Below are positions 7,700 through 43,541 of a DNA stretch of 64,000 nucleotides, one piece after another. This stretch comes from Octopus sinensis (lineage: Eukaryota): assembly GCF_006345805.1 (NCBI RefSeq), contig NC_043025.1, forward strand, positions 248,001 through 312,000, in the 5' to 3' direction. The notes under the pieces were generated by a model. It had not been told where the DNA came from, ran no database searches, and saw only the letters and a list, made by a program, of their open reading frames with translations. The position numbers and the translations under genes are program-made. Numbering within the stretch: the first letter of the stretch is position 1; the number at the start of each line of letters is the position of its first letter.

Positions 7700-7905
7700 T
7701 CAACTGAAGTCTGATAATAAACATTCAGCTGCCACGAAACATTCGGTTTCTAAAAGTGCTTCTTTTAATGTTTGAGGTGTACGTTTCGCTGGATCGCAAC
7801 TTTGGAACCATTTGAGAAGCATCTGATAGCCTTGTTCCACAATGTTATAAGGATTTTCGTGCCTGACTATTTGCAGGTCCTCGTCTGTAATTTCTAATTC
7901 CCTTC
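7700..7905 (-). CDS. Gene A terminal exon 13: DEATH domain, C-terminal part
   Basis: Acceptor ttgtatcttttgcag, phase 1. Encodes (G)RELEITDEDLQIVRHENPYNIVEQGYQMLLKWFQSCDPAKRTPQTLKEALLETEC...* with death-fold hallmarks (RELE, I..EN, YQMLLKW, L..AL). TGA at 7700-7702. Confidence 0.88.
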
Positions 7906-8349
7906 CTGCAAAAGATACAATAAGAAATAATTGCAAAAGCATTAACGATAATATAAAACCTGTGAACTGTAAATTATAGAACTGACAAAGAAATTATGTG
8001 AATAGACGAATGAGAAATACTGAAGAAACACGGAAAATAGAAGACATTGTTATCTGTTTCTAAAGAGTTTGAGAAAAATAAGAAACAAGTTGAAATAAAA
8101 GCTGGAATTGGAGAAAACATTTAAAGATCGAATAAAATTGAAAGTTACACATGAGAAATCATCTGGTAAACAACTGGCAGGAGAAGTGTTTGTGTGGGCA
8201 GCAGTATACGAAAAGCTCAAGAATCAACAAAAACTACCAATAGTTACACCATTTCATCTATCCATTCATTTTCTTTGCCCTCTCTTCATAGGAGGGTTAT
8301 AGGGGTAGAGTCCTCAGGCACCTCCTTCATACGATTCTATCTAAAGTAA

Positions 8350-8700
8350 CCTTGATTAGAAATTCTGAGAGGATTTCCAAGCACAACCAATTGAAACTAT
8401 GGTTTTTATGCAAAAATTTATTCTTGGTTTAGCCCCAGGTCTTCTGTCAGTTGGCTCAGCTCGATGAATCCCTCTTTTGATTCTTTCCTGAGACATTTTA
8501 ATCACATGCCGGTAGTATTGGAGCAGCTGTGACCTCTCAATGCAGAGAAGCAGTCGTTTGGCCTGGAGAGACACCCAAATTTTGAAGCTGCATGCGTTAC
8601 TCCAGGGACTCCTCAGAGGAACTCAATTTCAGTCGTTTTGATAACATCCCATATTCAAAGACTGAAATAGTCACCTGTGATGTGGTCCCTCCTATGATTA
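8350..8700 (-). mobile_element. RTE-like LINE C-terminal fragment
   Basis: LLLCIERSQLLQYYRHVIKMSQERIKRGIHRAEPTDRRPGAKPR resembles the RTE 'IERSQLRWFGHV..M...R.P...GRRPRGRPR' tail. Confidence 0.65.
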
Positions 8701-9149
8701 GTAAATAATAAAAGATTATCAAAATTCAGAAATATCTCGAAAGTGGGATATGACTTCAACGGCACAAAGTAAAAATATAACACTGTTAGGTACATATCAC
8801 ATATTATAGAAGATACCAGCTGAAAAGTTAGTCTTGGAATACTGACTCCTAAAAAGGAATTCCTTCACTGGCTGAAGGCCACAATTTCAAAAGAATCTCC
8901 TACAGGAGAGGCCAAGAGTAAGCAAAGCAATGGGAAGATTTAGTTGTAGGCAATAACAGAACATCTACACCATACACCTACAACACACTTGGGTCCTGAA
9001 AGAATCCCTGCATCCTCAAACATCTACATCATCTGGAAAGTTATCACAATTTATATGCAGGGGGAAAAGGTTAATAGGATTCTATATGGTTACTAATGTA
9101 CCAATAGGTGCAGTGGTACACAAGGCAAGTTTAAAGGGAGGACGGGTTA

Positions 9150-10290
9150 GGGTTGGAAGGAGAATATTTTATTAAAGTAGCGATTTATACGTAAGTAATG
9201 TAGTAATCAAGCAAGTATATAAAGAGTGAGAATAATTAACTGGGAGGGAGTAAGAGGAACATTTTAATGCAGAGGAAATAGTTTGTTGTAAGATCAGTGA
9301 AAGAGATGACTATGGACTAATGTAAGTGAAGATTGGTCAGAAGGGAGATTTAAAAGTAATACAGTTGAAGCGGATTTATGTCGAGATGATACTGGCGAAA
9401 TGGTTAAAGTGTTAGTAATGTAAGAAACAAGTGGAGTATGAGAGAGAGATGAGGGGTTAAGAGAGGAATTAAATGTGGTAATTAAGAAGTGATGTAAAGG
9501 GTGGGATATAGTAAGGGCAAGAAAGTATGATGAGCGATAATGACATTTGGAAAGCTTGTACGAAGTGACTAAGTGGTAAGTAGCGTGATCTTCTAATGAT
9601 CTGTGCCTCGGCTGGAGATTTTGAAAAATGAAGGATTAGAAAATGACGTAAAGAATTTTAATGTAGGAGTGTTTAAGGAAGGATTATTTACTGGTAAATG
9701 TCAGTACACGATATGTAGTAGTAAGAACTGCAGAGAATAAGATATTAGCAATATAATCGTACAGAATGATTTGGATTATTAATAAAACATTTACTGGTAA
9801 ATAAAGTGCAGAATCGGATTAGTTATAGTAAGCGTATGAAGGATCTAACAGATAGAATGTGATCAAAGTGCAGTACTTGAGAAATGAAAATGTAAGAAAT
9901 TTGTCTACTGGCACTAAGGGATTCTGTTCAATGAAGGAGAGATTGATTGTATTGTAAATGAACTTTGTAGAATAGGAAATAAGAAATGATGAGCTATCAT
10001 AGAAGTGTATGTTAAGTGGATGTAAAATAGAATCTGATAGTGATTAAGATTTCAGATAGGAAATGGATGAACTGAATTCTGGAAGAAATACAGCGATAAA
10101 CCTGACAAACACCACACGACTGTGGGAGAGTCGTCTTGCACATACAAACTTGGAGAAATGAACGTAAGATGTTGATTATATTGGACTGGTGTTAATGGAT
10201 GATTTTTACCCCAGTATATGACTGGTACATTTGTATGACTGCTAGAGAAATAACAAATTAGCAATGTCACAGATGATGTCCTCTCTTAAT
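9150..10290 (-). mobile_element. Highly degenerate retroelement-like remnant (possibly the N-terminal region of a Penelope-like ORF)
   Basis: Strand-asymmetric composition and weak fragments (HLTFISPSL..., VLLLNLPSDQSSLT). No diagnostic catalytic motif was recognised. Confidence 0.3.
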
Positions 10291-10626
10291 TTAGATAAAT
10301 AATTTCTATCAGCTGACTGAGGGGATAATGTTACGATCTCTTGAGTCAGGGGTGAAAGGTTCAAATCTAGTCCCCCAACACAGCTCAATGTCCTGGTAAA
10401 GACATCTCTCTTCTGGTTCAGTCTACGAACCAGCGGGAGGTAAAGATATTGCTGTAAATAATATGAACATTATATAAATGATATTTTATGTTGTTAAACT
10501 TTCAGACAAGAGGAAATGGGATACTGTGATGTTCATGCCTTTCCAATAAAGGAGAGTGAAATGATTTCAATTGAAAAACAAAATCAAGTTGAGTTTGAAA
10601 TTTCGGATGAGATTCTTTTTTTAACG

Positions 10627-10706
10627 TGAGTTTCATTAATTTACAATACTGAGTTCAATCCAGCCATGAGTTTCATTAATTTACAATACTGAGTTCAATC
10701 CAGCCA
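10627..10706. repeat. Perfect 40-bp tandem duplication
   Basis: tgagtttcattaatttacaatactgagttcaatccagcca occurs twice in a row. Confidence 0.95.
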
Positions 10707-41380: not shown

Positions 41381-41418
41381 CTGTTACTCTGAGTTTCTCG
41401 TTGCCGTTCATCAGACAG
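41381..41418 (-). ncRNA. Minimal type-I hammerhead-like motif
   Basis: ctgt-CTGATGA-a-cg(gcaa)cg-a-GAAAC-tcaga-GTA-acag. Stem I is ctgt/acag and stem III is near-palindromic. The stem II closing pair is A.A rather than G-C. Confidence 0.5.
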
Positions 41419-41804
41419 TGTTTGCTATATATATATATATATATATATACATACATACTAATATAGGATGAAGTTTTTTTTACAGAAAAATATTCCATCA
41501 AAAAATGTGGCAGCATATTAAAATAACTTTACTGTTAAATTATAAACAACTTATAAATAAGGGCTAAAGAAAAGTATTTCAATGACAATTTGCTGATAAC
41601 AGACTTTTAAATCGTCAATTTCCACATATTATTTACTCGCTACAGAAAAAAAAACACGAAGAACTGAAACCGGGAGAAGCCGGCCGATAGAATGTTTTTT
41701 AAAAAGTTCGTTATTTCTATATTGAATCAATTTCGAAATTAATCTCATAATAGATTCTTTCGTCTTCAGTAGAACATACGAAAGGATATGAATAAGATAC
41801 TTAC

Positions 41805-41850
41805 GTCACAACCCCGAGATAGTAAGATCTCCACTGCATGAAGGTGATCA
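41805..41850 (-). CDS. Gene A exon 2 (46 nt, phase 2-0): ankyrin helix 2
   Basis: cttttactcgcag acceptor and gtaagt donor. Encodes (S)DHLHAVEILLSRGCD. Confidence 0.9.
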
Positions 41851-41919
41851 CTGCGAGTAAAAGATAGAAACATTGACTAATTTACATTAAATATGAAAAT
41901 ATTTTGGCTTTGAGACGAA

Positions 41920-43180
41920 ACATTATCGTCATCATCATCATCATCATTATCACCTGCACTATTATCATCAATATCATGCTCATCAACATCATTACCATCA
42001 TCATCATTGCCACCACCTCCATCATTGACAAAATCATCATCATCATCATCGCCATCATCGCCATCATCATCATCGCCTTCATCATCATCACCATCTTCAT
42101 CACCTGCACTATTATCATCAATATCATGTTCATCAACATCATTACCATCATCATCATTGCCACCACCTCCATCATTGACATAATCATCATCATCATCATC
42201 ATCATCACCCTCATTGCCAACACCATCATCATCATTATCATCTTCGACATCTCCAATATCATCATAATCAATATTATCATCATTCATTACCACTATAATC
42301 AAAATCATCATTATCATCAACATCGCATCTATCATCATCATCAACACCATCATCAACAGCAAGATCAACCTCATTATCATCATCATTATCATCATCATCA
42401 TCATCATCATCACCATCATCATCATCGTCATCATCATCGTCATCATCATCATCGCATCTATCATCATCATCAACAGCAAGATCAACCTCATCAATATCAT
42501 CATCATAATCATTATCATCATCATCATAATAATAACATCATTATCATCATAATAATTACATCATAATCATCATCATCGTCGTCATCATCACGATAATCAT
42601 CATAATAATCATTGTCGTCATCATCATCATCATCATCCACATCATCATCATCATCATCATCATTATTATCAACATCTTCATCATCGTCGTTATCATCATC
42701 ATCATCATGGTCGTCATCATCATCATTATCATCATCATCATCATAATCATCATCATCACCATCACCATCGTCATCTTCATCATCGTCGTTATCATCAACA
42801 TCATGATCATGATCATCATAATCATCATCATCATCATCATCAACACCATCACCATCATCAGCTTCATCATCGTGGTTATCATCGTCATCATCATAATCAT
42901 CATCATCATCGTCGTCATCATCATCATTCATCGCCACTATAATTATAATCATCATCATCGGCATAATCACAGTCATCATCATCATCGTCGTTATCATCAT
43001 CAGCAGCAGCAGCATCATCATCACCATCATCATCACCATCATCATCATCATCATCATCATCACCATCATCGCCTCCATCATCATCATCATCATAATCAAC
43101 AACACCATCATCATGATCGACATCATCAATACCGTCATCGTCATCATCATCGCCGTTGTCATCATCATCATGGGGATTGT
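41920..43180. repeat. Imperfect (CAT)n array in intron 1 of gene A
   Basis: CAT-rich tract mirrored as (GAT)n at 51177-52335. Confidence 0.95.
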
Positions 43181-43383
43181 TATGATTGAATAATGACTAA
43201 TGACTTGGATCGATGACTAAAGAGAAGCTTGTTGTTGTTGTTGTTGTTGTTTGTAGTCTGCTGTTGTGCTGTTGTCCCACTGCCCTTTTCTATGGCATCT
43301 TTGGATATTGAACCTGTGTCTGCAATTGCAACAAATTTACAAACAAAAACACATCTGCAGATTTTACTTGATTCTCAACTTAC

Positions 43384-43541
43384 CTCCACACAGCCAAATG
43401 CAAAGCTGAACGACCCCATCTGTCTTTCGCTTCTAACTCCGCACCAGCTTTTAGCAATACTTCGATGATTCTTCTATCGGCGCCCTTATAGCAGGCCCAC
43501 ATTAAAGGAGTTATTCCAGATCCATCAAAAGGTTTATTAAT
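43384..43541 (-). CDS. Gene A first visible exon (158 nt, phase 0-2): ankyrin repeats
   Basis: ttcttcattacag acceptor and gtaagt donor. Encodes INKPFDGSGITPLMWACYKGADRRIIEVLLKAGAELEAKDRWGRSALHLAVW. The upstream ATG exon was not found. Confidence 0.92.

Follow-up and report, generated by a model that had tools for sequence, protein, structure and literature searches.

Mind bomb-like ankyrin repeats and RING joined to a death domain in an Octopus protein family whose exons diverge faster than its introns

Here, we describe a gene on the minus strand of a 64-kb stretch of the Octopus sinensis genome (chromosome scaffold CM016887.1, assembly GCA_006345805.1; the whole stretch is called the window below), whose 478-residue product begins with about seven ankyrin (ANK) repeats and a single C3HC4 RING, followed by a linker that is disordered and by a C-terminal death domain (DD). 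Taken as a whole, the evidence is probably best explained by an Octopus family of ANK-RING-DD proteins derived from Mind bomb, in which variable ANK recognition is coupled to DD assemblies. What is new here is the contrast between the exons and the introns of close gene copies, together with a focus of the replacements on the predicted binding positions of the ANK repeats. The family and its mode of evolution appear to be previously undescribed, whereas the gene itself is already annotated.

Little is known of innate immunity in cephalopods, a group reported to have few of the death-fold expansions found in other marine invertebrates (PMC8195603). An Octopus-only family with an immune-receptor-like diversification of its binding surface would offer concrete candidates for sensing pathogens or host conflict, and would be an example of domain shuffling and exon duplication yielding a new signalling architecture. 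It is also a warning that homology-based names (here MIB2-like, PSMD10 or PP6 subunit) can mask the architecture of the proteins that carry them.

A 13-exon gene annotated as MIB2-like

The window is AT-rich, has many microsatellites and is eukaryotic in character. A crude join of minus-strand open reading frame (ORF) pieces with ANK, RING and Death matches led to protein P0001, which is RefSeq XP_029652960.1 (Octopus sinensis 'E3 ubiquitin-protein ligase MIB2-like isoform X2'), and which was then mapped back to the window at 100% identity, with exon boundaries taken from an exhaustive junction search. The resulting spliced model consists of 13 exons, all with GT donors and AG acceptors, and spans 43565 to 7700 on the minus strand, with a coding sequence of 1437 nt including the stop codon. 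Its 478-aa product is 100% identical to P0001, and because this is an exact match to an independent database protein across 13 exons, the model is not a product of chance. Exon phases are 0-2, 2-0, 0-2, 2-0, 0-0, 0-2, 2-1, five times 1-1 and finally 1-stop.

A previous interpretation made from the letters of the DNA alone (the sequence-only reading) had arrived at exactly these 13 GT-AG exons and phases, but at a sum of 1413 nt and 470 aa. Whereas its exon structure stands, its start does not: it took 43541 as its first position, just behind an AG that lies within exon 1, and thereby lost the eight codons for MSSLSSLQ that follow the true ATG at 43565. Nor is the gene cryptic, as it had been called, given that RefSeq annotates the locus with six isoforms and that its precomputed Pfam list includes Death. 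The proposed joining of exons 12 and 13 to the ANK-RING part is kept in 6 of 6 RefSeq isoforms.

Read along the minus strand, exon 1 (E1, 43384–43565) runs from the ATG through the whole of ANK repeat 1 into repeat 2, of which it encodes the first half, and contains hypervariable binding-surface codons, and E2 (41805–41850, phase 2-0) adds the second, scaffold helix of repeat 2. The likewise hypervariable E3 (39421–39575) encodes repeat 3 and the first half of repeat 4, whose second helix lies on E4 (34281–34317) and is conserved between copies. Repeats 5 and 6 are on E5 (29429–29641), followed on E6 (25791–25969) by an atypical terminal repeat and cap, whose collinear counterpart is the C-terminal end of the ANK domain in Mind bomb. 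The RING, of the IAP/MIB zf-C3HC4_3 class, occupies E7 (22812–22954). Beyond the linker exons E8–E11, the DD starts on E12 (11258–11329), which covers the N-terminal part of the first long helix of the structural model (presumably helix 1 together with the start of helix 2), and is completed by E13 (7700–7905), with the stop codon at 7700–7702.

Domains and predicted structure

The ANK-RING-linker-DEATH order proposed by the sequence-only reading is borne out by both Pfam and AlphaFold2. In the full-length protein, Pfam places Ank in five stretches, zf-C3HC4_3 at residues 270–314 (E = 6.8e-8) and Death (PF00531) at residues 394–462 (E = 2.5e-8), and with 34.4 bits against a curated cut-off of 22.6 the product of E12 and E13 does score as a death domain. 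The same scan gave no match to ZU5 or UPA, and none at E ≤ 0.01 to the plant XB3/XBAT31-type RING PF24921.

We ran AlphaFold2 with a 48-sequence family alignment, as a single-sequence run was poor (predicted local distance difference test, pLDDT, 46.6). The model comprises an ANK solenoid of seven helix pairs (residues 10–265, pLDDT mostly >90), a moderately confident RING (pLDDT roughly 70–80), a disordered linker (residues 318–384, pLDDT <50, block means of about 30–36) and a helical C-terminal domain (residues 390–478, pLDDT mostly >90). The predicted DD helices span residues 393–413, 418–427, 432–446, 454–463 and 467–477, the first long one presumably corresponding to helices 1 and 2. When the PDB was searched with the complete model in Foldseek, the 50 matches listed were all ANK proteins, including the MIB1 ANK domain 8v0e, and none of them speaks to the DD fold. 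By sequence, the solved structures closest to the DD are the DDs of ankyrin-3, ankyrin-1 and ankyrin-2 (E = 5e-5 to 8e-5), followed by RIPK1 (1.7e-3), TRADD, Fas, CRADD and FADD. All zinc ligands of the RING are present with cross-brace spacing (C272, C275, C287, H289, C293, C296, C305 and C308), the eight being largely kept in most of the 48 aligned relatives, and its nearest solved counterparts are the RINGs of cIAP1/2, CGRRF1 and XIAP.

Homology of the ankyrin-RING part to Mind bomb

Judged by homology, the ANK-RING part has Mind bomb ancestry. P0001 aligns collinearly with O. bimaculoides MIB2 (P0162; BLASTP, E = 2e-39, 29% identity over 365 aa). The alignment covers the ANK repeats, crosses the atypical terminal one and extends into the first of the two RINGs of P0162, with the last RING aligned weakly. 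In P0001, the single RING is followed by the disordered linker and the DD, and the catalytic last RING of Mind bomb, with its coiled coil, is absent. Pfam finds no MIB_HERC2, ZZ or SH3_15 (the MZM and REP modules) in P0001, whereas REP (the Mind bomb SH3 repeat, PF18346) is present in the octopus MIB proteins P0162 (3.7e-51) and P0161; bona fide octopus MIB proteins exist apart from the P0001 family.

The sequence-only reading had allowed for an upstream MIB-type N-terminus that would make the gene an ordinary Mind bomb paralog, and neither an MZM/REP domain nor an upstream family exon was found. On the minus strand, no family exon lies between the ATG and the divergent paralog that begins at 50783, the N-cap exon of other family members (MDxxxxKI..DVEG..) does not occur in the 64-kb window, and the ORFs upstream of the ATG have no Pfam match. 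A Mind bomb orthologue was therefore rejected, as the MZM/REP modules and the catalytic last RING are missing.

Catalysis by human MIB1 is confined to its last RING and the accompanying coiled coil, the ANK-RING1-2 part being inactive and monomeric and showing no autoubiquitination; the MZM and REP modules of Mind bomb bind Notch ligands (bioRxiv 10.1101/2024.03.01.582834). Vertebrate MIB2 acts in trans on a DD protein, RIPK1, which it binds via its MZM and ubiquitylates in the TNF receptor complex (PMC5912950), and in death-domain signalling it ubiquitylates both RIPK1 and cFLIP (PMC5912950, PMC7815719). Since the RING of P0001 is collinear with the first Mind bomb RING, ligase activity is not to be assumed. 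The 'ubiquitin ligase' of the sequence-only reading is therefore uncertain, although the eight zinc ligands are present and the RING scores above the Pfam cut-off.

On the same scaffold, the relative P0043 has an ANK-RING-RING order and a precomputed Pfam list with neither a MIB N-terminal nor a Death domain; it may be an intermediate form.

Exons that diverge faster than introns

We compared the gene with two close copies, taking 300 nt as flanks. E1–E4 were aligned with a head-to-head paralog inside the window, and all exons except E10 with L001 (scaffold VCDQ01005690.1), a copy that is collinear over the whole gene and its 3' flank. The exons of L001 were set by homologous boundaries, an exact GT-AG model of its protein P0279 failing at E6/E7, where an extra 'FLFLR' needs an AT acceptor.

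Between these close copies, exon divergence is 3–5 times that of the flanking introns. For the in-window pair, exons are 89.2% and flanks 96.9% identical (Fisher p = 4e-10), with E1 at 88% nucleotide identity and its own flanks at 97–99%; for L001, the corresponding values are 89.4% and 97.7% (p = 6e-39). The in-window pair has a dN/dS of 2.3 (dN 0.150, dS 0.065; 44 non-synonymous against 6 synonymous differences, p = 0.05), and its synonymous divergence matches that of the introns. Against L001, divergence is concentrated in E1 (80.7% identity), E2 (82.6%), E3 (85.2%) and the DD exon E13 (85.0%), whereas E4, E8, E11 and E12 are 97–100% identical, at or above the level of the flanks, and serve as internal controls. 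The RING exon carries seven non-synonymous differences and one synonymous difference, and L001 keeps every compared exon intact. Change of the ANK surface and, in the L001 comparison, of the DD exon is thus accelerated.

The replacements fall on particular positions. Counted from the T of the TPLH motif, we took -4, -3, -1, +4, +7 and +8 as the ANK binding positions, five of which (all but +4) are those randomised in designed ankyrin binders. In repeats 1–4, 19 of 24 such positions are replaced in the in-window pair compared to 15 of 107 others (p = 1e-9), and 18 of 24 compared to 21 of 107 in the L001 pair (p = 4e-7). Across the 48 relatives, entropy reaches 2.29 bits at binding positions and 1.02 elsewhere (p = 1e-10). 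The 'sensor' proposed by the sequence-only reading is made more plausible by the hypervariability of the predicted binding positions in both copy pairs and in the family alignment.

Family size, range and naming

A profile of the RING-linker-DD part was searched against 1.84 billion cluster representatives, and 250 family or matching sequences were parsed locally for domains. Among these, 55 proteins combine RING and DD, and every one with a readable source comes from O. sinensis, O. vulgaris or O. bimaculoides. An alignment search of 5.8 billion proteins gave 90 matches, that is, 88 Octopus clusters (90% identity) and two ANK-only metagenome proteins, and a word-based region search returned Octopus proteins only. 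The matches from outside Octopus that were looked up cover either the DD part of the profile alone (Gadus, Acanthaster and Branchiostoma) or the ANK and RING part alone (a Nicrophorus mib1-like protein, Watersipora and Caenorhabditis). Our literature search found no description of an octopus or cephalopod ANK-RING-DD family, or of a MIB2-like expansion.

Relatives go by the names MIB2-like, MIB1-like, ankyrin-3-like, PP6 ankyrin subunit, PSMD10, EHMT1-like and RF_0381, and several O. bimaculoides members are called 'Death domain-containing protein' in UniRef. Many members match the profile via the DD while their precomputed Pfam lists lack PF00531, so the domain is hidden in part of the family. 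The expectation that automated pipelines would label the gene 'MIB2-like' and hide its DD was thus right in the naming and for part of the family, but not for this gene, whose own list has Death.

Two relatives depart from the common layout. P0147 (O. vulgaris, 278 aa) reads RING, DD-like stretch, leucine-rich repeats (LRR) and a further DD-like stretch; its LRR are clear, its RING and Death Pfam matches are sub-threshold, and the second DD-like stretch is visible with the family profile only. P0121, with 712 aa a long form, has two stretches of DD and roughly doubles the number of ANK repeats.

Linker exons and isoforms

The spacer between RING and DD is encoded by four cassette exons of 51 nt each, namely E8 (22176–22226, EGPKSSKPEVQMLAEPP), E9 (18072–18122, VNRTFEVKETQTLAEPV), E10 (16098–16148) and E11 (13532–13582, VRPKVEDKASQTEAQPL). 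These and E12 (72 nt), all five of phase 1-1, lie in homologous genomic units, which have in common roughly 100 nt of the intron before the exon, the acceptor and the region of the donor. E12 is a paralog of the linker exons that is flanked by the same intron sequence and is longer by 21 nucleotides. As the units of E8–E12 are homologous, the spacer arose by tandem duplication of the first DD exon. E10 is a recent tandem duplicate of E9 and has no counterpart in L001; the units of the two exons, about 2 kb long and 1944–1983 nt apart, are mostly 97–98% identical (one block 90%). Each linker exon is also preceded, at a distance of about 200 bp, by a repeated element in the intron, which the mapping of P0001 showed to be distinct from the true 51-nt exons.

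RefSeq isoforms of 481, 478, 464, 447 and 430 aa differ by skipping E9/E10 and E8 and always keep RING and DD, so that the annotated omissions concern the first three of the four linker exons, in 17-aa steps; E8 is absent from isoform X6. At another locus of the family, the isoforms number more than 20, and many differ by steps of 17 aa. Isoform X1, with an extra 'STF', would require an acceptor site with AT in place of the usual AG (window 34318–34326, minus strand), and so would the paralog isoform P0279 with its 'FLFLR' (L001, about 23955–23969); these AT acceptors reflect either non-canonical splicing or models transferred from paralogs.

Elsewhere in the family, P0074 (O. bimaculoides) has the DD helix-1 exon twice, P0004 (O. 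vulgaris) ends in ...GEYKIPVPN, a linker-exon donor and the following intron translated into a DD-less read-through form, and the linker of P0014 (O. sinensis) continues into unrelated sequence.

Proposed origin and role

We propose that the family arose from the middle part of Mind bomb, that is, its ANK repeats and first RING, as homology and architecture suggest. The N-terminal substrate-binding modules and the catalytic last RING would have been lost, and a C-terminal DD of ankyrin/RIPK1 type gained via a disordered spacer. The ANK domain would then offer a variable surface for recognising ligands that themselves change, for instance proteins of pathogens or of host conflict, and the DD would recruit the protein into homotypic assemblies (MyD88/IRAK/FADD/RIPK-like) or drive oligomerisation. 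Clustering would gather the RING and the bound target for ubiquitin-dependent signalling or turnover, with the length of the spacer tuning reach. The most likely role is that of a diversified ANK recognition module coupled to DD assemblies. E3 activity of the predicted RING is plausible, and the functional likeness to TRIM, IAP and NLR receptors drawn by the sequence-only reading is a putative one; an immune or conflict role is our best guess from the evolutionary signature and the types of domains involved. A more far-reaching version, for which we see a possible but doubtful case, holds that this is a genus-restricted family of dozens of intracellular receptor-like proteins, each with a hypervariable ankyrin 'paratope' under diversifying selection wired to a RING and a DD, forming an ANK-based counterpart of TRIM5/NLR sensors with spacer length set via alternative cassette exons.

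Several observations weigh against this picture. The L001 comparison gives a dN/dS of 0.74, and its four-fold sites in unchanged codons differ by 8.6% compared to 2.3% in introns; since these sites are elevated, the exon excess may partly reflect homogenisation of introns, or conversion of exons from other paralogs. To some degree, any ANK family would be expected to show high entropy at its surface positions. Many members lie on unplaced scaffolds of 30–70 kb that are possible haplotigs, and L001 may itself be a haplotig and not a paralog, in which case family size may be inflated and the pattern between the two copies would mean extreme allelic diversity. The observed range is limited by the cephalopod proteomes in the databases, so that other cephalopods may be missing from it, and for expression of the main gene, RefSeq models are the sole source. 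Lastly, the RING corresponds to the one that is inactive in human MIB1, its last Cys is followed by Gly in P0001 where cIAP-type RINGs carry Arg, and in one subfamily Asp replaces the zinc-binding His (PCGDLVLC or PCGDIVFC; P0007, P0008, P0010, P0012, P0024, P0025, P0036, P0038, P0045, P0046, P0006 and P0016 in the family alignment).

These features of the RING are what would be expected of a non-catalytic DD adaptor or decoy, in which Mind bomb RING1 survives as a structural remnant and the protein, binding targets via its ANK repeats, caps, seeds or blocks DD assemblies or presents targets to another ligase. Its human counterpart is monomeric and without autoubiquitination, the terminal catalytic RING and its coiled coil are missing, the residue after the last Cys varies across the family (Arg, Gly, Leu and others), and the changes in the RING exon relative to L001 are, with one exception, non-synonymous. 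If the RING is inactive, the family would illustrate the conversion of a ligase scaffold into an adaptor of the death-domain kind. We consider it unlikely on balance, though deserving of serious attention: the eight zinc ligands are kept here and in most of the 48 relatives, the RING scores above the Pfam cut-off and resembles active IAP RINGs, and clustering driven by the DD could substitute for the missing dimerisation element. A non-immune, octopus-specific role, such as neuronal or cytoskeletal scaffolding of the ankyrin type, would instead attribute the exon/intron contrast to concerted evolution of introns combined with relaxed constraint. It draws on the closeness of the DD to those of ankyrins and on the elevated synonymous sites in the exons of the L001 pair, and other large octopus-specific expansions are reportedly linked to the nervous system in the O. 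bimaculoides genome paper. That role seems to us improbable in view of the in-window dN/dS of 2.3, the replacements on binding-surface positions, a synonymous divergence at the level of introns and the absence of ZU5/UPA modules.

The remaining two explanations fare worse. RefSeq naming and the ANK-RING homology to MIB2 would suit an ordinary Mind bomb paralog in Notch-ligand endocytosis, but this is already contradicted, and hence very hard to sustain, as the protein has none of the MIB_HERC2, ZZ and SH3_15 modules that bind Notch ligands, no upstream family exon and no catalytic last RING, and separate octopus MIB proteins exist. The model could also be suspected of being a pseudogene or an artefact of annotation, in which an ANK-RING gene and a DD gene of its own have been fused, given the non-canonical AT acceptors required by some RefSeq isoforms of the family and relatives such as P0004 that end in read-through of a linker-exon donor. 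We reject this as highly improbable: the frame is open over 13 exons with canonical sites and compatible phases, the same architecture recurs in dozens of relatives from three species, the collinear L001 has every exon intact and the DD is predicted with high confidence.

The head-to-head paralog and the rest of the window

The paralog used in the comparison above occupies 50783–60613 on the plus strand, 7.2 kb from the main gene and divergently transcribed. Its first four coding exons (50783–50967, 52411–52456, 59457–59611 and 60577–60613) lie in the window, beyond which it continues. An (ATG)n array in its intron 1 (51177–52340) is mirrored by a (CAT)n array in the main gene's own first intron (41921–43171), and because of these mirrored arrays and the head-to-head order the pair looks like an inverted duplication. 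A RefSeq model of 451 aa on the opposite strand spans the whole locus on CM016887.1, and a related protein of 450 aa, P0008, makes use of the exons at 59457 and 60577 in the window, whereas its N-terminal ~93 residues are only 73–79% identical to the in-window exons at 50783 and 52411. Either there are alternative sets of 5' exons and the studied gene sits nested within an intron, or the model is mis-joined.

Further repeats and mobile elements are found in and around both genes. An (ATC)n array of 4 kb (34775–38800, ~1340 copies) fills most of intron 3, a GA-rich array of about 5 kb with higher-order periods of 120–240 nt (45428–50763) lies between the divergent genes, and a 100-N assembly gap sits directly upstream of the main gene, near 44.24–44.34 kb. 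An intron of the plus-strand paralog contains a non-LTR (long terminal repeat) retrotransposon ORF (52781–54921, plus strand; RVT_1, 7e-33) and, after it, a PHD/C1-like zinc-finger match that is weak and sub-threshold, as well as tandem repeats of 62–63 nt in a GC-richer block (55343–57424, 47–49% GC). A degraded copy of the retrotransposon, related by likeness of translation, with one scanned piece having no Pfam match, is located in intron 4 of the main gene (30729–32124, plus strand). In intron 6, the translation of stretches within 24000–24720 (minus strand) resembles, by eye, a Tc1/mariner transposase, and a weak PIF1-like helicase fragment downstream of the main gene (6044–6208, plus strand, E = 0.0019) is possibly a Helitron remnant.

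Comparison with known systems

The octopus protein shares with MIB1 and MIB2 a homologous, collinear ANK domain, including the atypical terminal repeat, and the zf-C3HC4_3 RING that follows it, and vertebrate MIB2 also operates in death-domain signalling. Unlike them, it has neither the MZM (MIB/HERC2-ZZ-MIB/HERC2) nor the REP (SH3_15), carries one RING instead of two or three, has an added C-terminal DD and belongs to a large, fast-evolving Octopus family, whereas Mind bomb is a conserved gene of one or two copies. Ankyrins (ANK1-3) and ANKDD1-type proteins, the latter likened by architecture alone, also combine ANK repeats with a C-terminal DD. Whereas ankyrins have 24 ANK repeats, a ZU5-UPA supramodule and a spectrin-binding region, the octopus protein has about seven repeats and neither of the other two, and it differs from both ankyrins and ANKDD1 in the RING placed between ANK and DD.

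The RINGs of cIAP1/2 and XIAP are of the same subclass, and IAPs are ligases inside death-domain signalling complexes; they recruit via BIR domains and adaptors, however, dimerise by way of the tail of their C-terminal RING and lack both ANK repeats and a DD. With TRIM5-like factors, as these are generally known, the resemblance is an analogy only: a diversifying recognition domain combined with a RING and an oligomerisation element, lineage-specific expansion and positive selection on the binding surface. The domains themselves are unrelated, ANK standing in place of SPRY and the DD in place of B-box and coiled coil.

Cephalopods have very few or no TRADD-N domains, and expansions of Death-like and TRADD-N domains, often with ANK repeats and ubiquitin-system domains, are known from oysters, amphioxus, echinoderms and cnidarians (PMC8195603). 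The octopus family resembles these marine-invertebrate expansions in being large, architecture-shuffling and species-specific.

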